Below are positions 876 through 35,904 of a stretch of 37,197 nucleotides of DNA, piece after piece. The notes under the pieces are model-generated. The model was not told the origin of the DNA. It saw only the letters and a program-made list of their open reading frames with translations, and searched no databases. Both the position numbers and the translations under genes were made by a program. How positions within the stretch are numbered: position 1 is the first letter of the stretch; each line of letters opens with the position of its first letter. The stretch comes from Octopus bimaculoides (lineage: Eukaryota): NCBI RefSeq assembly GCF_001194135.2, contig NC_068992.1, positions 64,629,592 to 64,666,788 on the forward strand, in the 5' to 3' direction.

Positions 876-907
876 CCCTAGCCAAAACACTATGTTTTCT
901 TTTACAG

Positions 908-1077
908 GTGTTACATCAGTGTGGTGGTGCTACATTCCTTTATATATGCCATGGGCGGCTACGATGGCCAAGTACGTCAGAACACGGCTGAACGCTACAA
1001 CAAAAGCAAAAATCAATGGAGCTTCATTCAACCGATGCATCACCAACGCAGTGATGCCAGCGCTACAGTTCTCTACG
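908..1077 (+). CDS. KLHL10: KLHL10-like Kelch protein, internal exon (5' exons lie upstream of the window)
   Basis: tttacag acceptor and G|gtaaat donor. Translates (R)CYISVVVLHSFIYAMGGYDGQVRQNTAERYNKSKNQWSFIQPMHHQRSDASATVLY(G), closely matching the KLHL10 Kelch repeats as recalled (RCYVSV...FIYAMGGFDG...NTAERY...NQW...PMHEQRSDASATTLYG). Confidence 0.9.
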
Positions 1078-1704
1078 GTAAATAGTTTATAGACGTTCTT
1101 CCATACATACTCAAGATACTGTAGATCGTCGGCTGTCGTCTGCCATGCAGCAAGAATGGTGGTTGTACATGTGTGAGCAAATCAAAATTAATTTGCTCTT
1201 TTTATTAAGACTTGGGATTAAAATTAGGGTGCTGTGGAATTTATCTGTGAGATAGAAAAGCAGCTTATTGATCCGTTTTTAAATGTCTGCGTCTTAGCTA
1301 ACAATTACCACGAAATTTTGGTGGTCATTCTGTGTCTTTCGATTACCAAATGTGTTTTGAAAGAGCTGTTTTTTATCTTTTTTCTTTTACAAGTGGCAAT
1401 GGCGATATGAATAGGTGTGTTGTTGAAGGCAATTCTGTAGGTTTCATGTGGATTGTTGATGTATTGCCTGCGGAGACATCAGCATAGTAAGCAATATTTC
1501 TAATCAAGATATTTGCTTTTTAGACGGAATTTCAGTATATTTCGGCAATTGCTTGTCGTATCCTTTCCTTCTACGTCTTTTCTTCAACAGTTTTGAGACT
1601 TAATGGCACTAGCGTTTTTATGCCGCTCCCCTTAGCGTTTTTTCTTCTTTTTTAATGAAGACCTTGTGAAATTTATGACTGCCTGAGAAAGATTAAGATT
1701 ATCC

Positions 1705-2818: not shown

Positions 2819-4392
2819 GTAGGAACCATTAACTTTTATACATCGTGGTCCCTGTTTCCCCTCTCCTTCCCCGAACTTTGAATAACCAATTATCTATCTG
2901 CCTATTTATTCTAATAACCTCTCTACCTATCTTTCTGACAATCCTTCTTTCGTTTTAACCTAACTTACTCTTTCTGTGTCTGTCAATCCGTCTGTCTCTG
3001 TCTCTCTGCCTGTCTGCCTGTCTGCCTGTCTGTCTGTCTGATGTAGAGATTTCTCGTGTGAGAATATATGTATGGTAACCATAAAAATCAGTAAAAAGCA
3101 GGCCTACAGTGAAACTAGGATAGTATCCAGATTACTTCTACTGTGTCTGTTTAGACAAGTAGTATATTGAGTTACAGAATTTCGAAACAAACTTGTCGAA
3201 GTGACAAGACATCTGCCAAAAATTCTGACCTTCTAAAACACGCACCAACACGGATCCCGCTCCATGATCCAATGTGTGATTTCTGAAATCCAACCAACAG
3301 TCCACTAAAGAGTTGTCCTTAAACTGACTGATGATCCCCGAAAAAATACACCGGTTAGCCAGCAAATAAGGCCAGGGCAAGGTTTGCATAACACTTGCGC
3401 TCCTTCAGGTGCAGGGACAGGGAAACCCCACCTCCCTGACATGCTTCGTCTGGAAACCCCACGACCAAAGAAACGATTTCTGTAATGTTACATGAAGCAT
3501 CCATGACAGCATCCCCCCTTACTCACCCTACGCTCGTAAATGCTGACTATGCCTTCCCGAGAAACTGTATATACTACAACATCCTGCAGAAGCCGTCAAG
3601 AGGAAAACCAGTTTATCGTATCGCTGCCATCAAAGAAACGCTCTGTTAATGAACAATTGATTGCTACTACCCCAGAAAGACAACCTTGACTTTTGTAGGC
3701 CCTTGTGCACTTGCAAGGTAGACAACACCTGTTCATTCGTTAAGAGATTATTCTCCTTCCACTAACCACCACTGCTGCGAACAACTAGTTACAAATGCAT
3801 CGAATACAGTTCCGCACATCACACAAAGAACCGCGTACAGCAGGGCCACATTTTCATCTGTTCTCGCAAAAATATTACTAATAGCTAACCTCATACTGCA
3901 AGACTAGTTACCTCACTATGCAGAACAGTGACAGCAGGCTCTCATTCCAATTTAATGTCGCTAAATTGTCAAATTCCACAAGTGGTAGACTTACTGCCGC
4001 CGCTAGAATATCCCTTGTACCACATACGTGGAACAATAAGTAAGAAAATTTGTTGCCGTTGTATTGTCAACTTCAACTCGTGAAATTTCGAGCCAATGGA
4101 GGTTTCCAATTATTCTTACTTCGAAGTTATATTTATTTCTTCTCCACTCTAAGCTTAAGCGTCCGATGAACTCAACATCCACGAAACTTCGAGTAATGTG
4201 CAGCTTATTCTCCTTGTTAATAAACACATTTCACTTCCACTGTGTGTTGAGTGTCTCTTCATTACTTTATATTTTTACTCATAGGTGTTATAGGTGTGTT
4301 TATGTTTAGATATATATATACAAAAATACTCATATACAATATACACACACCTGCACGCAAACCCGCCCATACGTCCACATGCATGCATGCGT

Positions 4393-4636
4393 GTATGTAT
4401 GTATGTATGTATGTATGTATGTATGTATGTATGTATGTATGTATGTATTATGTATATATGTATGAGAATGAGGGAAACTTGGTCTGCAATATCTACAGTC
4501 GTGTATATTTATCAAAGCTTGGACTCATTAATCACTAGCAGAGCCACAAGTAGAAAGCATATATTTGTCCGAATGCGCCACATACTTAACAGTCAGTGAT
4601 GGTCTCCCTAAGTTGCTAGTAGATACCTTGTGTGTA

Positions 4637-4669
<33 letters not shown>

Positions 4670-4872
4670 CTGTGTGTGTGTGTGTGTGTCTGTGTCTGTG
4701 TCTGTGTCTGTGTGTGTATGTATGTATGTATGTATGTATGTGTAAATATTTATCCGAATTCCTAATCAAAACTTTTTCTATAATAAATATGACTGTTATT
4801 TTGTCCTACCATTGAGTCGTCCCCATCAGTAAATTCCAAAAACTTCTTTAAAATAACAACTTAAAGTTAACT

Positions 4873-4932
<60 letters not shown>
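4393..4932. repeat. microsatellite cluster (ATGT)n, (GT)n, (CA)n
   Basis: Seen directly at 4393-4447, 4629-4742 and 4874-4932. Confidence 0.9.
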
Positions 4933-7005
4933 ATGAAATAAAGCTCGTTAATACTTCTATGTAGAGTCAAACTCATGTATAACCAGTGATACTCACGGCG
5001 TACATTCACAGCTTGACTAAATATGTCTGTAGTCAACATACTGTTCACGATTTCTTTAAACATATGTAAGTATTTGTGCATTTCTATCTCTGTATAAACT
5101 TATGTATAAATGTATGTTTATGTACATATTATATATTGATTAAACTAATTACTATTCTATAATTTTAAGTTTTATGCCAGGAAAACAATCTTCATGTGTT
5201 CTCTTCATCTATAACAATAAACACGAAATTCTGTCCGTCCGTCCGGGACCCCTGTATCTCAGTTTACATTTGCTCTCCATAGAGACATATAACTTTTTGG
5301 AATCAGTATGATCCCGGGGTTGAAAAGCTGCCCTTTATTTGGTTCTTGAACATCCAGCATTGGGATCAGTTCTGGATGAGGACTGTTATATGCTTACAGT
5401 TGAAAATTCAAATTTTAAAAGGACTCCAAAAATTTGTGAACTTACAAGTTTTTCATTTAAGCTGAATTAATAGTAATACCATATTTGGTAGTGTGCCAAT
5501 GAATACTTTATTATTATTGCGCTCTGTAGTGTTGGGCTGTAGGCTCAATTAGCCCTCCACAGGAGCTAGCTTAAAAGTTCGCACGGAGTGTGGCTTTTAA
5601 GCTAGTATGATATATAATAATGAGTGAAAGAGAATGTTTTCATAAATACCAAGTGAAATCAAGACGGTAAATATCTATTAGTACAATAATAAGTGGATTC
5701 ATCGATAGAAAACAGTTGTTGTATCTTGGAAGAGCATATTGTAATCATCCAATATGCTGTAAAACCTTCTGTTGATGCTGCAATTTACTATAATTGCATC
5801 AAGTTTTTCTTTGCGGTTTTTTTCTTTTTCTTTTTGTGGCACTTGCAGAAAATCTCAGATCTTATATTCAAATAGTTCGTAGGATGATTTTAATTAATTT
5901 GAATATGATATTTTTCCGATATGCAAAAGTAGCAATATCTGAAACTGATCATATTTGGCTTAAAGTAATCTATAATTAGTTACTTAATGTTAAAATTATC
6001 TATACTGCTGCCTTTTAATTTTCATGCATAATTTGATAATGTTGTAGTTATTCTATTATTTTCAATCCAGAATAAAAAATTTAAAAAAAAACAAAAAAAA
6101 AACGTAAAAGACATTCAATGAGTAGTTACTCTCTGTAAAGCCAGAGAAGTGTTTGACCATAAATACTTCAGTGGAGGCTAGCTCTGTAAATGACTGATTT
6201 AGTTTTGCAGTAGCTATCACATGAGCATGACGCTATAGTTCAACATTTAGACGTTGCCTTATCTTTCCTTGTTTATTGAGATTTAGAGGTATAAGTACTT
6301 CCCCTTTTCGCTGTGTAGCTGTAACCCACCTTATTATTACAGTTAGACAATCTTCTGAATCAGTAGTCGATTCCAAAATGCTTAATGAATACTAAAACTT
6401 ATGTAATTGAATTAGATTTCGCATTCAACGGAAAACGATGTTAAGTCAAGCTATATAAAACGCGCTTTCTGTTATACTCAAAAAGCAGTAGAATAGCAGT
6501 GAATTTTAAATATCATATTAAAATTAATATTTGCTCTGTCTCACGAATAAATGCTCTTTAATTTATCCGTCATACTATTTTGTTTATATAATGATATAAT
6601 GTTTATCTAATCATATAATGATATTTCTGAACAAACTGACTCCAAAAAGGCTGCTGTTGGTCTGCATTGGCAAAACTTATACAGTACAATGATCTTGCCT
6701 TGGGGAATAGAAAATCTGACGTCTCGAACAGATTTCTTCTTCGGGGAAAAGTTGAAAGGAGAGAAATGTGTGTGTGTGTGTGTGTGTGTGCATGTAGATA
6801 CAATAAAATCAGAAATCAGATAGCTCTTGTTCACACTTTAACAGGAGATATTTTAAAATCATAACATAAGGATTGTTACATGTTTTTTTTTAAAGGTAAA
6901 ATGTACATCATCTCGCTTATTTTTTTTTTAATCTTCAGCAAAAAACAATGGCATTGCTTTCTTAGTTTTTATATATTCTAAAATATTTCACGCAAACTAT
7001 TACAC

Positions 7006-7065
<60 letters not shown>

Positions 7066-7348
7066 CATCGAATACCTTACGTGGAGTCATATGCTTTTTA
7101 TTGAAGTTGCAAAACCTTCACAAAGCTGTAAAGAGTTTCACGTTCCCGTTCGTCGGACGGTTGTGATGAATGCTGAAATAAAATTGTGATGGTACATTTA
7201 ATAAATGTAATTATTTAAGTTTTGGGTATGTACCTAGTGGTTAGCCAATGAAGCGCATTCGCCGCTGATGGCTACTTGACATCATCCACGGCATTTGAAC
7301 AATTGTTACTGGATCTATTTCAGGAATTTCTCAGTATTCGTTGAGTAA

Positions 7349-7726
7349 ATAACAAATGATAGAGATGGAGAATGGAATATACGAGAAACCCGTGTAGAAT
7401 GTTATGACACGATCTCAGAGCAATGGTAAGTTCCATACAAACCAAGGAGGCCATTCTTTATTGCTCGCAACGATAGTTTCGACACATCCTGCATCGATCC
7501 GACGTGGGTGGGGTACAGCCCGGCGGCTTAAACCTACCGTTACTAACTGTATTAACACCGTGCGAAACAGGGTTTATTTAACGAGATACCCCTTATAACA
7601 TCACTTGACGAGGTACTTCTGCATTAAGGGATGCACTACAACCAGTTGTACAGTATTTCACCCGTGAGGGATCGCTGCAGCATGGGTTTCTCGTTTATTC
7701 TATTTTCCTTCCCTACCATTTGTTAT
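7349..7726. mobile_element. non-autonomous TIR element carrying a KLHL10 exon/intron fragment
   Basis: Inverted arms 7349-7394 and 7681-7726 match at 39/46; internal 7389-7459 matches 8810-8880 at 66/71. Confidence 0.7.
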
Positions 7727-8024
7727 ATATAAAAGAAATATTATATTATATTATATATAAATAGAAATTGTTTGATGAAATTGTATTTAACAATAAGAAA
7801 ATTCTAATATCACAACAAATCGTTTCGTAACTTAAAAACATGTAAGTAATTTATATTATTTAGTAATAAATAAATTACTCTCATGTCTGCAAAAAATCTT
7901 TATCCTATATATTCCATGTGTTATGTAGAATGATACGTATATAAGGAAGTTTTTTTTTAGTATTACCGGATTACTTGAATCCATATAAATTTATATATAT
8001 ATATACATATATAGATATATTCAT

Positions 8025-8063
<39 letters not shown>

Positions 8064-8187
8064 CATACATATACATGCATAAATATATGTGTATACACAC
8101 ACAGATATACATACATACATATATAAGCACACATACGTAAATATAAACATATATATATATATATATATATATACTCACACACACACA

Positions 8188-8481
8188 CAGCTTGTTCGTG
8201 AAATTAACGTGCAAGTGGCTGAGCACTCCACAGACACGTGTACCCTTAACGTAATTCTCGGGGAGATTCAGTTTGGCACAGAATGTGACAAAGCTGGCCT
8301 TTTGAAATACAGGTACAAGAGAAACAGGAAGAAAGAGTGAGAGAAAGTTGTGGCGAAAGAGTACAGCAGGGTTCACCACCACCCCCTGCCAGAGCTTCGT
8401 GTTTTCGCTCAATAAACACTCACAACACCCGGTCTGGGAATCGAAACCGCCATCCTAACCACTGAGCCATCGCGCCTCCAC
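8188..8481 (-). mobile_element. tRNA-derived SINE
   Basis: - strand head gtggaggcgcgatggctcagtggttagg...ggtttcgattcccagaccggg has A/B-box-like motifs; microsatellite flanks. Confidence 0.7.
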
Positions 8482-8754
8482 ATATATATACATATATATA
8501 TATATATAAATATATGTATGTGTGCGCGCGTGCGTGCGTGTGTGTGTGTGTGCGTGTGTATGTACATACATGCATACAGTCGCAATATTTTAAAAAATAT
8601 TTTCTTAAAAGCCATTAACTCTTTAAAAAAATGTCTTAGAAAAACAGAATGACAAATTTTTTGAAACAAAATTTTCATATTGTGTGTAAGCGCTTTCATT
8701 GATCAATGTTTCAAACACACATATTATATACATGAATATATATAATTTCTGCAG

Positions 8755-8846
8755 GTTTTGGAAGGCATGATATTTGCCATAGGTGGATTTGATGGTTTCA
8801 ACACCATTTCCCGTGTAGAATGTTTTGACACTGTCTCAGAGCAATG
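8755..8846 (+). CDS. KLHL10: KLHL10-like exon
   Basis: ttctgcag acceptor, VLEGMIFAIGGFDGFNTISRVECFDTVSEQ(W), TG|gtaagt donor (phase 2). Confidence 0.92.
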
Positions 8847-9214
8847 GTAAGTTCCATACAAACCGAGGAGACCATTCTTTCCTTTTATACATGCTATCAA
8901 AATTCCTTCTGTATTATTTTTTCCATTATAAATAAATGTTTTCTAACCCCATCCATCACCAACCTTTTAAGAGCCAGGCAAGATACAATTGTGTCTTCTA
9001 TCATATCTAAGCAACAACGGAAATGGGACAAAAATATCAACAAACATCAGTGCTTATTGCAAGAAGTCAACGGATGTTCTTTTGTTACTCTCATCAGTGA
9101 GGCAATGAATGACACCGCTTGTATGACAGTGACACTCATCCACAACTATCATGTAATGTCAAGACCTCCCCCCCCCCACACACACACATATAAGCAACAT
9201 ATACAAATATATGT

Positions 9215-9355
9215 CTACCAAACCCACTCACAAGGGTTTTGTTGGTCCAGGGTCATTGAGGAAAATACTTGCCTAAGGTACCATGCAGTTGGACTGAACC
9301 TTAAACCATGTGGTTAGGAAGCAAGCTTCTTAACCACACAGTCACTTCTGCACCT
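9215..9355 (-). mobile_element. SINE family A, 5' fragment
   Basis: Reverse-complement similarity to the head of 9403-9815. Confidence 0.65.
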
Positions 9356-9402
9356 GAATTTGAATGGATATTTTAAAAGTCTTTGAATTCAAATCTTGGT
9401 TA

Positions 9403-9815
9403 GTACAGGTGTGGTTGTGTAGTAAGAAGCTTGCTTCCCAACAACATGGTTCCGGGTTCAGTCCCACTACATAGCATCTTGGGCAAGAGTCTTCTGCTAT
9501 TGCCTTGGGCTGACCAAAGCCTTGTGAGTGGATATGGTAGATGGAAACTGAATGAAGCCCGTCGTATATGTGTGTGTGTGTATCTTTGTGTTTGTGTATC
9601 TTTGTGTTTGTGTTTGTCACCCCCGTCACTGCTTGACAACCGGTGTTGGTGTGTTTATGTTCCCATAACTTTGCGGTTCGGCGAAACAGACCGATAGACT
9701 AAGAACAAACCTTAAAATCTAAGGCCTGGGGTTGATTTGTTCAAAACCCTTCAAGGTGGTGTTCCAGCATGACCACAGTCAAATGACTGGAACAAATAAA
9801 AGAACCAAAGAATAA
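9403..9815 (+). mobile_element. SINE family A, near full length (octopus tRNA-derived SINE type)
   Basis: tRNA-like head (gtggttgtgtagtaagaagcttgc...ggttccgggttcagtccc), cttgggcaag core, internal (GT)n, tail atgactggaacaaataaaaga; many copies in the window. Confidence 0.8.
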
Positions 9816-11717: not shown

Positions 11718-11995
11718 GAAACAATTTTGATAACAATATGTTTTCTTTATGCAATTTTATTCTGAGTAAATATATTTGACCAAAGCAGTAAAAAATGAAT
11801 AGAAAAAAAAGAGTTTGTCAATGAAGTTATGCAGGAAGATTTTATAAAAGATTAATAGAGTTAGCGGTTGGAATAACCGTCTAAGGAATGAGAACATCCA
11901 TTTTACTACCGGTATAAACTACCTCTGTTAACCCTGGGCATACATATGCAAGCATACTATGCTCATAGGATACAGGTAATATCAGGAATCAAATT

Positions 11996-12507
11996 TAAAT
12001 TAGGCAGAAAATGGAGAAATCTTGATCAACAACAATTGACTAACATCGCTTATTATTTTTTAATACAAAGCTTTATCCCATCTAACAGCCGTTTCTGATT
12101 CCAATGTCCTGCAGTGTTGCTAAAGAAAATTCTGAGAATATTCGTCATATTTTGTAACACATCCGATCTGGAACATGGAGTTTCATCAGAGTGAAGAAAA
12201 ATACATAAAATAAAAGAAAAGAAAAGAAGAGCCTCGAGGGGAAGAATGGAGGTTTAATATATTTGAATCATACCATTTTGCAGTGTAATGCTTCAGGCCG
12301 TTGAGTAGATGACTAAACTAGAAATAATAATATTTCTAGTTCAGCTATTTATTATTTTTCTTCACTCTGATGAAGCTCCTTGGCAACACTGCAGGACATT
12401 GGAAACAGAAACGGCTGTTAGATGGGATAAAGTCTTGTATTAAAAAATAATAATCGATGGTAGTCAATTGTTGTTGATCAAGATTTCTCCAATTTCTGAT
12501 TAATTTA
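11996..12507. repeat. long inverted repeat (foldback)
   Basis: 11996-12212 is the reverse complement of 12345-12507 (about 90% identity by eye, with an ~60-bp segment missing from the right arm); spacer about 130 bp. Confidence 0.85.
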
Positions 12508-13009
12508 TATATATATATATATATATATATNNNNNNNNNNNNNNNNNNNNNNNNNNNNNNNNNNNNNNNNNNNNNNNNNNNNNNNNNNNNNNNNNNNNNN
12601 NNNNNNNNNNNNNNNNNNNNNNNNNNNNNNNNNNNNNNNNNNNNNNNNNNNNNNNNNNNNNNNNNNNNNNNNNNNNNNNNNNNNNNNNNNNNNNNNNNNN
12701 NNNNNNNNNNNNNNNNNNNNNNNNNNNNNNNNNNNNNNNNNNNNNNNNNNNNNNNNNNNNNNNNNNNNNNNNNNNNNNNNNNNNNNNNNNNNNNNNNNNN
12801 NNNNNNNNNNNNNNNNNNNNNNNNNNNNNNNNNNNNNNNNNNNNNNNNNNNNNNNNNNNNNNNNNNNNNNNNNNNNNNNNNNNNNNNNNNNNATATATAT
12901 ATATATATATATATATACGGGATGCAATGAGTAAAATGTTGCCATTTTATATACATTGCTTGTTTTTGATTTTGTTGACGACACAGTATAATGGGTTCAG
13001 TCATGCACC

Positions 13010-13430
13010 ATCTTTGAGAAAAACAGCACCATGACGCAATTCACTCTGCCAAAAATTTGGAAATGATATGCTGTAGTGCTTGGCATTCGTGCCAGAAGCT
13101 CCAATACGAACATTTCAGAGTGTTTGAATGTTAATCTGAGTACAGTGCAACCTGAGGGCATGTACCGAGAGTGATAAAACTCAAACATCCAGTCAACATC
13201 ATGGAGTTCAGAGTGATCACTAGTGATGCCGACGTTATGCCTCCATTTATCTTCCCACACGGCCTCACACTCAACACGGAGGCCTGCATCAAGTACCTGG
13301 AGGAGGTAGTGCTGCCCTGGCTGAAGAGGGTTGTTGCTGGAAGACCCTATCTGGTAACAGAATTCTGCACCATGCCACAAGCAAAACTCAGTCATGGATG
13401 TCAGACAATTTCTGCAACCATGTCTCCCCT
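13010..13430 (+). mobile_element. Tc1/mariner (maT/DD37D-like) transposase relic
   Basis: KHPVNIMEFRVITSDADVMPPFIFPHGLTLNTEACIKYLEEVVLPWLKRVVAGRPY resembles the ITm DDE segment V.VWG.I...G..P.F......N...Y...LE..V.PW; decayed. Confidence 0.7.
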
Positions 13431-13609
13431 AACTCCCATCCACAAGGCTTTGGCTATTGTAGAAAACACTTGCCCAAGGTGCCAAATAGTGGAACTGAAC
13501 CCAGAATTTTGTATTTGGATAGTAAACTTCTTACCACTTAAATTGTTTAATCATCAATTAATTACATATGCAACATTACCTCTCTGATGACAGGTAACTA
13601 TAGTTAGTA

Positions 13610-16500: not shown

Positions 16501-17172
16501 AAGTAAAAGATAAAAAAATAATAAAGTACATTTTATATTTCTTTAATAACATTAAGTTTTAAAAATTCTTTTTTTTCTTCTTTTTTTAATGTTTGCAGCA
16601 AAGAACCATAAATCAATTTAAAAGAGAAAAGAAATATACAATAAAAAAATTACAAACAAAGTAGGGTGGGTGTTAAAACTTGAAGACGGATTTCAAAGAC
16701 AAAAAAAGGTAAAATAAGCATTTCAGGGAGGGGAGTGGATGGAATCAAAACGCATCCACACAAGAATAAGGATCCATCTTCACCAAAGACATGGCAGGAA
16801 TCATTTACCATGGCTTACAAACTGCAGCAAAAAACTAGAACAGAACTACTTATACAATTATTTAGTCATCATCAGCCACATTTTATCATGTGCTTCCATG
16901 GGTTGGATGGAATTTATTGAAGCAGATTTTCTACAGCTGGATGCCCTTCCTGTTGTCAATCCTCACCTGTTTCCAATCAAGGTGATATTTCTCCATGGCC
17001 AGACGTCTTCTCGCAGAATATTGGAAATAAATAACAGCTTGTAAGACCACGACAATCATTTACAACAATCATTGCCTCTCCTTGTTTGGACAGCATTTCC
17101 AGACAAGGAAACACAAGCACACACACTCATGTATGTGCGTATGCTTGTGCCTCATATATTATATATATATGA

Positions 17173-17335
17173 CAGGCTTCTTTCAGTTTCCGTCTACCAA
17201 ATCTATTCATAAGGATTTGGTTAGCCCAAGGCTACAGTAGAAAACACTTGCCCAAGATGTCACTCAGCTGGAACTGAACCTGGAAACATGTGAATGGGAA
17301 ACAAACTTCTTAACACACAGTCACACCAGCACCTA
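17173..17335 (-). mobile_element. SINE family A, 5' half
   Basis: tcagtttccgtctaccaaatc...acacttgcccaag...gaactgaacc. Confidence 0.7.
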
Positions 17336-17698: not shown

Positions 17699-18249
17699 TC
17701 AGCATTTGTCCCTCAGACACACATCATTCTCTTTCACAGTTGACTGATCCATGTCTGTTACACTCTGGAGTACATCATTCTCTTTCACAGGTGACTGATC
17801 CATATCTGTCACACCCTGGAGTACATTGTTCTCTTTCACAGTTGACTGATCCACGTCTGTCACACCCTGACACACATCATTCTCTTCCACAGTTGACTGA
17901 TCCATGCCTGTCACACCATCACACACATCATTCTCTTTTACAGTTGACTGATCCATGTCTGTCACACCCTCACACACATCATTCTCTTTCACAGTTGACT
18001 GATCCATGTCTGTCACACTCCGACACACACCATTCTCTTCCACAGTTGACTGATCCACGTCTGTCACACCCTCACACAATCCAGGTGTTTGTTCTGTTTT
18101 GCCATTAAAACCAGAAACTGTCTTTTGGAAACTGTCACCATCTTCTTGGGAGAGTGTTTTCCTTGTGGAGACTTCTTGGAGATGGTCTGGATTGTTTGAG
18201 TTTACCAAAGAATGGTCAGATGGTATAGGTGTTCCAGTGAAAGAAGAAT
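17699..18249 (-). CDS. TIPIN: TIPIN terminal coding exon with 17-aa tandem repeat
   Basis: tttttctag acceptor; phase 1 opens (N)SSFTGTPIPSDHSLVNSNNPDHLQEV..., the same frame as ORF 17699..18208, ending VCLRDKC-TGA. Confidence 0.8.
17720..18076 (-). repeat. coding minisatellite, 7 x 51 bp (17 aa, consensus CEGVTDMDQSTVKENDV)
   Basis: Seven consecutive units read from the ORF translation; cagttgactgatccatgtctgtcacac recurs every 51 bp on the + strand. Confidence 0.95.
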
Positions 18250-25194: not shown

Positions 25195-25345
25195 AGACTT
25201 ATTTCAGTTTGTCTACCAAATCCACTCACAATGCTTTGATTGACTTGGGGCTGTCATAGCAGGCACTTGCCCAAGGTGCCATGCAGTGGGATTAAACCAG
25301 AAACTACATGGTTGGGAAGTGAACATCTTAACCACACAGCCATGA
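25195..25345 (-). mobile_element. SINE family A, 5' half
   Basis: tcagtttgtctaccaaatccactcac...cacttgcccaaggtgccatgcagtggg. Confidence 0.7.
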
Positions 25346-25802
25346 CTAAATACATATATCATCATCATCATCATCATCAGTTTATACCAGCTTTCCTTAG
25401 TTGTTTGGGTTGGATGGGCGTCACAGTGTAGCTCAGTTCTTTTTCTGAAATACTGAAGGACCACAGAACAATTGTATTTTCCAGTTTCAGCACAGTTTCC
25501 ACAACAAAACACCCTTCTTCCTAACACCAACCACTTTACAGAGTGTATTTTATCAACACCAGAAAGGTACAAGGCCAGAAATTTACAAGGAAAGGTTAGC
25601 CAACTAAATATAAACCAGTACAATATTTCATCGACCCCAGAAGGTTAAAAGACAAAGCTGATCTCAACAGGATTTGAACTCTGAATGTAAAACACCAGAG
25701 TAAATACTAAAAGGTATTTGACCCAAGAATCTTGAAGAAAATGAAAATAAATGGTAAAAAAAAAAGTGGGGTGAAAACAAAAAAAAAAAACACTGCATTT
25801 AC

Positions 25803-27940: not shown

Positions 27941-28097
27941 TACACACACGATGGGCTCCTCTCAGTTTCCATCTACCAAATCCACTCATAAGTCTTTGGT
28001 CAGCCTGAGGCTATAGTAGAAGACACTTGCCCAAGGTGCCAAACAGTGGAACTGAACCCAGAACCAAGTGGTTGGGAAGCAAGCTTCTTACCACATA
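27686..28097 (-). mobile_element. SINE family A, near full length
   Basis: Reverse complement of 9403-9815 with an internal (TA)/(TG) microsatellite. Confidence 0.8.
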
Positions 28098-28599
28098 GAT
28101 CATGAATACAAGAGTCCAAAATGGATTCCTCCAAAGAATCTCTGGAGTAACATTATTCGACAGGGTGTGTAGCTCAGAGATCAGGAAGTCTCTTCAGGTT
28201 GAATTGCTGCTTCACTGAACTGAGAAGTCACAGCTCCAGTACCACAGACAAGAGATTAGAATGTTACAGGGAAGAATTGCAAGACAGATTCTTCAAGCTG
28301 ATCCAACCAGTAAGAGACCTAGGGATTGACTAAGTACAAAATGGCAAGATAATATCTATAATCTTGGTTGGTTACACTTGGAAATCCAGCTGGAAAATAA
28401 CATGGCAGCTGCATCTGATAGGACCCAATGGAGTGGGCACCCCAAAGACCCTTCCAGGAATAGTGAGTGGAGAAAATGGCTGGATGGGTTTATGTTTTCA
28501 TGTTGTTGCAGAGTTCTTGGTTTTTATTCTTCGCAATATCAACCTACATAAGAACACTTCTGATTCCACAATACCAACTTTAGTATTATAGATCCAAAG

Positions 28600-30994: not shown

Positions 30995-32067
30995 CATCAT
31001 CATCATCATCATCATCATCGTTTAACGTNNNNNNNNNNNNNNNNNNNNNNNNNNNNNNNNNNNNNNNNNNNNNNNNNNNNNNNNNNNNNNNNNNNNNNNN
31101 NNNNNNNNNNNNNNNNNNNNNNNNNNNNNNNNNNNNNNNNNNNNNNNNNNNNNNNNNNNNNNNNNNNNNNNNNNNNNNNNNNNNNNNNNNNNNNNNNNNN
31201 NNNNNNNNNNNNNNNNNNNNNNNNNNNNNNNNNNNNNNNNNNNNNNNNNNNNNNNNNNNNNNNNNNNNNNNNNNNNNNNNNNNNNNNNNNNNNNNNNNNN
31301 NNNNNNNNNNNNNNNNNNNNNNNNNNNNNNNNNNNNNNNNNNNNNNNNNNNNNNNNNNNNNNNNNNNNNNNNNNNNNNNNNNNNNNNNNNNNNNNNNNNN
31401 NNNNNNNNNNNNNNNNNNNNNNNNNNNNNNNNNNNNNNNNNNNNNNNNNNNNNNNNNNNNNNNNNNNNNNNNNNNNNNNNNNNNNNNNNNNNNNNNNNNN
31501 NNNNNNNNNNNNNNNNNNNNNNNNNNNNNNNNNNNNNNNNNNNNNNNNNNNNNNNNNNNNNNNNNNNNNNNNNNNNNNNNNNNNNNNNNNNNNNNNNNNN
31601 NNNNNNNNNNNNNNNNNNNNNNNNNNNNNNNNNNNNNNNNNNNNNNNNNNNNNNNNNNNNNNNNNNNNNNNNNNNAGGCCCAATGTACGAAGGTCTTGCC
31701 TCACCACCTCAGCCCAGGTCTTCCTGGGCCTACCTCTTCCACGGGTTCCCTCAACTGTTAGGGTGTGGCACTTTTTCACGCAGCTATCCTCATCCATTCT
31801 CACCACATGTCCATACCAGCGCAATCGTCTCTCTTGCACACCACAACTGATGCTTCTAATGTTCAGCTTTTCTCTCAAGATACTTACACTCTGACGGGTA
31901 TTCACATTGACATTACACATCCAACGGAGCATACTGGCTTCATTCCTTGCGAGCTTACGTATGTCCTCAGCAGTTACAGCCCATGTTTCACTGCCATGTA
32001 GCATGGCTGTTCGTACGCATGCGTCATACAGTCTGCCTTTTACTCTGAGTGAGAGTCCCTTTGTCGC
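30995..32067 (-). mobile_element. 5'-truncated RTE-clade LINE (spans gap 31029-31675)
   Basis: Open frame ATKGLSLRVKGRLYDACVRTAMLHGSETW...RRLRWYGHVVRM...RGRGRPRKTWAEVVRQDL, the RTE ORF C-terminus; 3' tail acgttaaacgatgatgatg on the far side of the gap. Confidence 0.9.
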
Positions 32068-32876
32068 CATATATATGTATGTATATATGTATATATAAAG
32101 GAGACCACTAGGTGGACTGTTAATGTGCTAGAAGAAGATCACATGTAATGTGTAATTACATGTGATCTTCTTGGACTGCCTCTAATGCAGCTTTGATGGT
32201 CGCCCATAAGACATCTTTTGATGTAAATTGGCATCCATCAGCATAAGCATCTTGTTTAATGATAGACCAAAGATTTTTGATAGGGTTGAGATCTGGATAT
32301 GCTAGCGGCAACACCATCAACCTTTCACTTGTATGCTGTAAGACCCTAGGAATGAATGGGGTGATCCTAACAGAGTGGGAGAGAGTGTTGTCATGCATGA
32401 ATACGAGATTCCTTAGAAGTAACAGCAGTATGTCATCNNNNNNNNNNTACAGTCTGCCTTTTACTCTGAGTGAGAGTCCCTTTGTCGCCATATATATGTA
32501 TGTATATATGTATATATAAAGGAGACCACTAGGTGGACTGTTAATGTGCTAGAAGAAGATCACATGTAATGTGTAATTACATGTGATCTTCTTGGACTGC
32601 CTCTAATGCAGCTTTGATGGTCGCCCATAAGACATCTTTTGATGTNNNNNNNNNNNNNNNNNNNNNNNNNNNNNNNNNNNNNNNNNNNNNNNNNNNNNNN
32701 NNNNNNNNNNNNNNNNNNNNNNNNNNNNNNNNNNNNNNNNNNAGCGGCAACACCATCAACCTTTCACTTGTATGCTGTAAGACCCTAGGAATGAATGGGG
32801 TGATCCTAACAGAGTGGGAGAGAGTGTTGTCATGCATGAATACGAGATTCCTTAGAAGTAACAGCAGTATGTCATC
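32027..32876. repeat. identical tandem duplication (32027-32437 = 32448-32876) across a 10-N gap, probable assembly artefact
   Basis: Visible bases are identical; the junction is a 10-N spacer. Confidence 0.8.
32173..32437 (-). mobile_element. Tc1-like transposase fragment
   Basis: FMHDNTLSH...YPDLNPIKNLWSIIKQDAY resembles Tc1 DDE motifs QQDNAP.H and SPDLNPIENLW; duplicated at about 32594-32890. Confidence 0.8.
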
Positions 32877-35569: not shown

Positions 35570-35890
35570 TGCGACTAGGCCCGGGCACCGCTTCGAGGAA
35601 TTTTAGTCGAATGAATTGACCCCAGGACTTTATCTTTTATTCTATCAGTCACTTTTGCTAGATTGCGGAGACGTAAACACACCAACATCGGTTATCAAGC
35701 GGTAGTGGGAGACAAGAACCGACACGTATACGACGGGCTTTTTTTTCAGATTCTGTCAAGCAAATCTACTAACAAGGCCCTGGTCGGCCCCATGCTACAG
35801 TGGAAGACACTTGTCCAAGTTGCCACTCAGTGGGACTGAACCCGGAACCATGTGGTTGGGAAGCAAGCTTCTTATCACACAACCACGGCA
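35570..35890 (-). mobile_element. SINE family A
   Basis: gaccccaggact...caacatcggttatcaagc...gaagacacttgtccaag...gggactgaacccggaaccatgtggttgggaagcaagc. Confidence 0.75.
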
Positions 35891-35904
35891 GCGCTTGAAT
35901 TCAT

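Follow-up and report, generated by a model that had tools for sequence, protein, structure and literature searches.

A short sequence that reads like the end of an exon lies within an inverted repeat in an intron of a KLHL10-like gene of Octopus bimaculoides, upstream of the exon itself. How did a fragment of the gene come to rest there, and is it the cargo of a Pack-type transposon, as an earlier note on this DNA proposed, or the trace of another process? We approached the question through a single window, meaning the whole stretch of 37,197 nucleotides (37 kb) that was analysed; all positions are counted from its first letter.

Results

Host gene and assembly

The window contains the 3' part of the KLHL10-like Kelch gene on the plus strand. 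Translations of its exons match with 100% identity a fragmentary O. bimaculoides UniRef entry, A0A0L8I2P4 (P0017), while Kelch repeats 4-5 are hidden by a run of Ns. The vertebrate counterpart, KLHL10, is required for spermatogenesis. The inverted-repeat element sits in the 5.9-kb intron that runs from 2821 to 8755, immediately before an exon (8755-8846) whose homologue in KLHL-type proteins is the last Kelch repeat.

~906-1082, plus strand: exon of the KLHL10-like gene, translation as in P0017
...2821, plus strand: end of the exon before the 5.9-kb intron, translation as in P0017
8755-8846, plus strand: source exon, last Kelch repeat of the KLHL10-like gene, identical to P0017
11372-11545, plus strand: last exon of the KLHL10-like gene, translation as in P0017
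2420-2758: N run (assembly gap), hiding Kelch repeats 4-5
12531-12892, 31029-31675, 32438-32447 and 32646-32742: further N runs (assembly gaps)

The assembly is a draft, and no N gap falls inside 7349-8880. Far downstream, long "ORFs" near 30.9-32.1 kb are artefacts of translated Ns. Short N runs there are flanked by direct duplicates that are 100% identical (32027-32224 = 32448-32645 and 32304-32437 = 32743-32876), and these duplicates, spanning 32027-32645 and 32304-32876, seem to stem from scaffolding or gap closing and not from biology.

A copy of the neighbouring exon-intron boundary

Within 6500-9500 there is one direct repeat that is not a microsatellite: 7389-7459 agrees with 8810-8880 at 66 of 71 positions (blastn E 2e-25), figures that recomputation reproduced exactly as first given. 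The source, 8810-8880 on the plus strand, consists of the last 37 nt of exon 8755-8846 and 34 nt of the next intron, including an intact splice donor. It lies 1.4 kb downstream of the copy in the same orientation, again as described before. The element thus occupies the intron upstream of the copied exon, and the intronic part of the copy comes from the intron downstream of that exon.

Three of the five differences between copy and source fall in the exon part (7404, 7411 and 7412) and two in the intron part (7444 and 7450). At 93% identity the parental copy is the only source within 37 kb, and no further copies of the 71-nt repeat were found in the 37-kb window. Both ends of the copy are sharp. 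Beyond them there is no similarity between the flanks, for which gapped local alignment stays at shuffle level (p 0.67 and 0.51), and no arm-like sequence was found near 8810-8880.

In frame, the copy reads ...RVECYDTISEQW and the live exon ...RVECFDTVSEQW, the two peptides that had been reported; the copy has Tyr and Ile where the live exon has Phe and Val. At the Phe/Tyr position Tyr is the consensus of the Kelch family, found in 122 of 149 distant homologues against 21 of 149 with Phe, a comparison set made up of distant Kelch proteins only (at most 42% identity to P0017). The homologue whose motif is closest to that of the octopus, P0043 (VECFDSTSEQWY), has Phe. On the earlier suggestion that the copy may preserve an older allele or a paralogue, these comparisons point in different directions.

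The donor context is the same in copy and source, GAGCAATG before the boundary and GTAAGTTCCA after it, which bears out the claim that an intact donor was copied into the intron. The copied donor falls at 7425/7426, and its use in splicing is putative. An in-frame stop lies just upstream of it, and the acceptor candidates that precede it are all weak (AG at 7105-7106 and at 7344-7345), so that use of this donor would most likely yield a pseudo-exon with a premature stop.

The copy interrupts one arm of a longer inverted repeat

The outer arms, 7349-7394 and 7681-7726, are complementary at 39 of 46 positions (blastn, 49 nt, 83.7%, E 1e-9). These are the 46-bp arms of the earlier note, and its count holds; the repeat is longer than was thought, however, at about 76 nt per arm, as it resumes past 7394/7681. 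Just inside the right arm, 7651-7680 stands opposite 7489-7518, with 11/12, 15/20 and 21/30 complementary positions over 12, 20 and 30 nt (p 4e-4, 2e-4 and <2e-4 in 5000 shuffles). This inner stretch is the weaker part of the arms, matching at only 21 of its 30 positions. The left arm is therefore made of two segments, 7349-7394 and 7489-7518, split by 94 nt of filler (7395-7488).

7349-7394, plus strand: left arm, outer part, 46 nt, 39/46 complementary to 7681-7726; its last 6 nt are CCCGTG
7489-7518, plus strand: left arm, inner part, 30 nt, 21/30 complementary to 7651-7680 and paired in the fold
7519-7650, no strand assigned: loop or interior, 132 nt, GC 44%, CpG not depleted
7651-7726, minus strand: right arm, continuous, 76 nt, 60/76 complementary to the filler-free left arm

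Folding gives the same picture. In the minimum free energy (MFE) structure the outer arms are paired, the 94 nt are looped out as a side branch and the stem then resumes, with 7489-7518 pairing to 7669-7680 and beyond. As it stands the sequence folds with a z-score of -4.8, and removal of the 94 nt brings this to -7.5. With the filler removed, blastn finds a single ungapped inverted repeat of 61 nt (85%, E 1e-16), and taking out 7395-7488 makes the left arm continuous again and complementary to the right arm, which has no interruption. When the two halves were aligned globally without constraint, the alignment took a weak path through the exon copy instead; it was overruled by the shuffles, the MFE fold and blastn.

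Because the inverted repeat resumes at 7489-7518/7651-7680, the copy lies inside the left arm and not between two complete arms. The idea of an element that encloses a captured segment between its arms thus gives way to another anatomy, in which the segment belongs to 94 nt of patchwork set into one of the two arms of about 76 nt. To judge from the restored sequence, the ancestral unit would have measured about 284 nt: a 132-nt loop between arms of about 76 nt each, which today are complementary at 60/76 positions.

There is next to no chance that these resemblances are fortuitous or a product of the assembly. The draft status of the assembly, its N gaps and the 100% identical duplicated gap flanks elsewhere in the window make the question a fair one, but the copy has an E value of 2e-25 and the restored arms one of 1e-16. 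The repeats are also diverged (93% and 79% identity), unlike collapse or duplication artefacts, and 7349-8880 is free of gaps.

The filler as a probable patchwork

The 94 nt of filler comprise the exon/intron copy, 12 nt without a template and a probable second piece of the same exon.

7395-7459, plus strand: filler piece 1, copy of 8816-8880, with 31 nt of exon end and 34 nt of downstream intron; donor at 7425/7426
7460-7471, plus strand: filler piece 2, 12 nt (ATTGCTCGCAAC), no template above shuffle level in the window
7472-7485, plus strand: filler piece 3, probably also copied from this exon (12/14 to 8791-8804)
7486-7488, plus strand: ambiguous 3-nt junction, ATC; 7483-7488, CACATC, agrees with the arm motif CCCRTG at 4/6
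8791-8804, plus strand: probable template of piece 3, 6 nt upstream of the first template

At the left junction, the 6 nt CCCGTG (7389-7394) are common to the end of the outer left arm and to the start of the direct repeat in the exon, so the copy does begin within the last 6 nt of the arm, as had been observed. The right arm has CCCATG at the same spot. As this is the form expected from CpG decay of CCCGTG (CpG to CpA), the motif was already in the arm when the event took place. It was native to the arm and not brought in with the exon copy, and the 6-nt microhomology between arm and exon is therefore genuine.

Past the 12 nt for which the window offers no template above shuffle level, 7472-7485 (GATAGTTTCGACAC) matches 8791-8804 (GATGGTTTCAACAC) at 12 of 14 positions, in the same exon and on the same strand. 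For the 29-mer that remains of the filler, this is the sole match of at least 12/14 in the whole window on either strand, and 300 shuffles gave no hit in the exon, where about 0.002 would be expected. Since the match was noticed after the fact, we regard 7472-7485 as a probable second piece from this exon and grade it no higher. The right junction is uncertain by about 6 nt, because CACATC can be read either as the end of piece 3 or as a decayed second CCCRTG; the pattern CCCRTGCTGCAKCGATCC matches 7483-7500 with 2 mismatches.

The order of the exon pieces is permuted: 7472-7485 follows piece 1 in the filler, while its template precedes that of piece 1 in the exon. Such an arrangement fits repeated template switching, or separate priming by the two broken ends, and does not fit erosion of a larger duplication. 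We had also considered that the 71 nt might be all that is left of a tandem duplication that once covered more of the exon region and was later eroded or overwritten by insertions, a reading to which we give only a very slight probability. Copy and source do lie on the same strand of the same gene, 1.4 kb apart, and a second exon-like piece is close by. Against this, no residual similarity is left in the flanks even with gaps (shuffle p 0.67 and 0.51), the exon pieces are permuted, and the split arm encloses the copy on both sides, an arrangement that erosion would not create. Flank homology being absent, the duplication remnant was rejected.

The hairpin is older than the filler

The order of events can be read from the arms. 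The right arm is continuous opposite the interruption of the left arm, so the hairpin is older than the filler. The divergence of the repeats leads to the same order: the two arms differ at 16 of 76 positions and the copy differs from its source at 5 of 71 (Fisher p=0.018), which again places the hairpin before the filler. When the intron part of the copy is taken alone (2/34), the comparison with the arms gives p=0.054. Jukes-Cantor (JC) distances are 0.25 between the arms and 0.07 from copy to source; set against a time scale for octopus repeats (PMC13282606), they would make the filler roughly 10-25 My old, with the hairpin older.

What we observe is probably accounted for by a MITE-like hairpin in the intron of the KLHL10-like gene, the left arm of which was broken and then patched by microhomology-primed copying of an exon 1.4 kb away. 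We infer a break, its repair by gap filling or template switching, and no later movement of the element. The starting point would have been an inverted-repeat element of about 284 nt in the 5.9-kb intron, MITE-like in size and shape and putatively a transposon. Its left arm would have been broken 46 nt from the outer end, whether by a transposase, by processing of a hairpin or cruciform, or at a stalled fork. The exposed end, ...AAACCCGTG, could then have annealed to the CCCGTG of the exon, which lies on the same strand 1.4 kb further downstream, and a polymerase would have extended it from there by 65 nt over the exon-intron boundary. At least one further template switch would have added first the 12 nt that match no template in the window and next about 14 nt copied slightly upstream within that exon, before the end was rejoined to the remaining arm. 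One arm would thereby have gained a 94-nt patchwork, which contains an exon end that does not function and a splice donor that looks intact. As the copy contains intron, a nascent unspliced transcript is conceivable as the template, besides DNA.

That the arm resumes after exactly the filler speaks for repair; a point against is the length, 94 nt being long for classical polymerase-theta filler. What remains of the proposed Pack-type capture with microhomology is a local copy on the same strand, joined via CCCGTG, whereas its role as cargo between intact TIRs does not stand. A patchwork within one arm suggests repair filler in a pre-existing hairpin rather than a gene-carrying Pack-type element.

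Transposon or simple hairpin

What was the hairpin before it was patched? Several features are those of a MITE: inverted repeats of about 76 nt (79%), a small size (284 nt without the filler) and no Pfam match. For a target-site duplication the only candidates are TA (with termini ACAAATG...) and the 6-nt TAAATA/TATATA with one mismatch, in flanks that are AT-rich. Interior and arms have a GC content of 44-63%, against 19% in the right flank, and are thus foreign to the surrounding AT-rich intron. The observed/expected ratio of CpG is about 1.1 over ~7050-7700, including the left flank at 7090-7348, against 0.48 for the window. Since CpG is undepleted beyond the left arm, the end of that arm may not be the insertion boundary, and the element together with its left flank may form one younger or unmethylated unit. 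Octopus genomes hold many Tc1/mariner, other TIR and MITE families (PMC13282606), and this abundance makes a MITE plausible here.

The window holds no relatives of the element. Its arms occur once in the 37 kb, a result that says little about their copy number in the genome, and the loop (7519-7650) has no template elsewhere in the window. A six-frame query of arms and interior gave no hit among the 5.8 billion proteins of an ORF collection, and the restored arm junction gave 0 matches in metagenome contigs; since a repeat family with at least 6 copies in the window, taken as a positive control, drew no match in either collection, these negatives do not bear on copy number. The element gave no Rfam match at gathering thresholds or at E<=10, no tRNA with ARAGORN and no Pfam match in its frames, so that its interior holds no recognisable coding or RNA family.

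It is possible, if doubtful, that the inverted repeat was never a transposon and arose instead as a local inverted duplication or foldback, whose fragile hairpin then underwent the same repair event. Its single copy in the window and the lack of a convincing target-site duplication would fit such an origin, as would an interior without transposase remnant, RNA family or protein family match and a CpG content that stays undepleted over ~7050-7700, past the left arm. An origin by local duplication sits less well with the size and shape, which are typical of MITEs, with the abrupt break in composition at the end of the right arm, or with a 132-nt loop and arms that have no template elsewhere in the window.

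The opposite possibility strikes us as unlikely: a MITE family, still active or active until recently, would have supplied the arms as its TIRs, and a Pack-type element able to move, or moved in the past, would carry the KLHL10 piece as cargo. The inverted repeat is real, of MITE size and with a foreign, GC-richer interior; the TA flanks are compatible with a Tc1/mariner-type insertion, families of that kind and MITEs are abundant in Octopus (PMC13282606), and the capture junction shows microhomology. Yet the fragment splits one arm 46 nt from its end and does not lie between complete arms, the arms are 21% diverged, and no second copy occurs in the window. Moreover, the source is only 1.4 kb away in the same intron-exon neighbourhood, which argues that the structure was formed in place rather than having arrived by transposition. 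A MITE-like hairpin, broken and repaired where it stood, continues to be our preferred account.

Other repeats in the window

Several unrelated repeats were recorded. Just downstream of the last exon of the KLHL10-like gene and adjoining an assembly gap, an inverted repeat of 134 nt (11993-12126 vs 12377-12510; 92% identity, spacer about 250 nt) makes a MITE or foldback candidate (11993-12510) in a better state of preservation than the element at 7349-7726, to which it is unrelated in sequence. A SINE-like family of about 150 nt has at least 7 copies with 70-84% identity and a conserved core (...ACTTGCCCAAGGTGCCA..GGGACTGAACCC...), two opposed copies of which form a 72-nt inverted repeat at 9261-9332/9423-9494.

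9212-9360: SINE-like copy
9408-9573, minus strand: SINE-like copy
13452-13543: SINE-like copy
17165-17327: SINE-like copy
25204-25348: SINE-like copy
27962-28098: SINE-like copy
35746-35901: SINE-like copy

Between the element and exon 8755-8846, a GC-rich block flanked by microsatellites (8190-8470, minus strand) resembles on that strand the head of a tRNA-derived SINE (GGCGCGATGGCTCAGTGGTTAGGATGGCGGTTTCGATTCCCAGACCGGGTG...); it drew no ARAGORN or Rfam call and has no second copy in the window. A tandem array at 17710-18078 has a period of about 51-52 nt and copies that are about 87% identical. At 13156-13584 on the plus strand there is an open frame of 143 codons (...VMPPFIFPHGLTLNTEACIKYLEEVVLPWLKRVVAGRPY...), which resembles a remnant of a mariner-type transposase; it has no Pfam match at E<=0.01.

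Discussion

Gene fragments within or beside inverted repeats have been described in several settings, and the octopus locus shares part of its anatomy with each. In plant Pack-MULEs, capture is mostly in trans, the elements are often multi-copy, and they have distinct 9-10 bp target-site duplications and Mutator-type TIRs. The likeness here is confined to a gene fragment between inverted termini; none of those other traits is apparent in the octopus window.

A second parallel is the abortive gap repair known at the P element and at Ac/Ds, which leaves short filler copied from nearby, joined through a few bases of microhomology, at or inside the terminal repeats. The octopus filler likewise has a nearby template, microhomology at its left junction and a position within a putative terminal repeat. 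The filler of P element and Ac/Ds follows the breaks of transposase excision, whereas the octopus break could equally stem from fragility of the hairpin.

Microhomology-primed copying in cis, several switches and permuted pieces also characterise insertions made by polymerase theta end joining and by FoSTeS/MMBIR, and the octopus filler probably shares these traits. As in templated insertions generally, there is a template in cis, 1.4 kb downstream, with microhomology at the junction, and a site that is continuous without the insert. Classical end-joining filler is usually shorter than about 30 nt and templated within about 100 bp; unlike it, the octopus filler measures 94 nt and has its template 1.4 kb away, which brings it closer to gap filling or replication-based switching.

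The nearest parallel is found among animals. Tan et al. (2021, Nat Commun 12:4280, PMC8277862) reported 370 Pack-TIRs in 100 animal genomes, most of them single-copy; in 57% the parental copy is no more than 15 kb away, usually less than 5 kb, the breakpoints show microhomology, and the authors ascribe these elements to transposition-independent gap filling, citing the gap-repair model of the P element (PMC8277862). In that survey both flanking repeats had to match at least 10 bp of consensus termini of TIR transposons, and a unique parental copy of at least 90% identity, itself not flanked by the element, had to reach a BLAT score cutoff of 100 (PMC8277862). The octopus fragment has a parental copy of 93% identity with one source in 37 kb, and at 71 nt it falls below the BLAT cutoff of 100. 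Breakpoint microhomology, frequent in Pack-TIRs and not obligatory, is present at the left junction as CCCGTG.

Like the single-copy Pack-TIRs, the locus shows a short host fragment copied in cis, over less than 5 kb on the same chromosome, into an inverted-repeat element; it is present once (in the 37-kb window), has microhomology at a breakpoint, is intronic and could alter host transcripts. It is unlike them in that the octopus arms are only putative TIRs, the 71-nt fragment is below the detection score of the survey, the fragment splits an arm and is not in the interior, and the filler is a patchwork of at least 3 pieces. The statement that no such case was described for a mollusc family holds as far as molluscs go, neither molluscs nor octopus being mentioned in the Pack-TIR survey, but the process itself is catalogued in other animals (PMC8277862). 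Taken together, the comparisons suggest that the octopus case is a DNA-repair scar of an ordinary type, one with precedents in animals, and that it is probably best read as break repair by microhomology-primed copying, as in single-copy Pack-TIRs (PMC8277862).

For the gene, the event left the KLHL10-like locus with a splice donor copied perfectly into one of its introns, with no evident functional consequence unless the donor is used or the element family is mobile with its cargo. A far-reaching scenario would have a mobile cephalopod Pack-MITE family that repeatedly acquires host fragments, together with use of the donor at 7425/7426 in testis, the resulting premature-stop pseudo-exon tuning expression of the KLHL10-like gene; we consider this highly improbable. 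The interest of the locus lies more in its legibility. Because the uninterrupted right arm records the state before the event, one genome is enough to reveal both the junctions and the order in which things happened. The locus thereby provides a well-preserved cephalopod example of an intronic hairpin-forming element that was probably patched with nearby genic sequence, and would extend to molluscs a process catalogued for other animals (PMC8277862).
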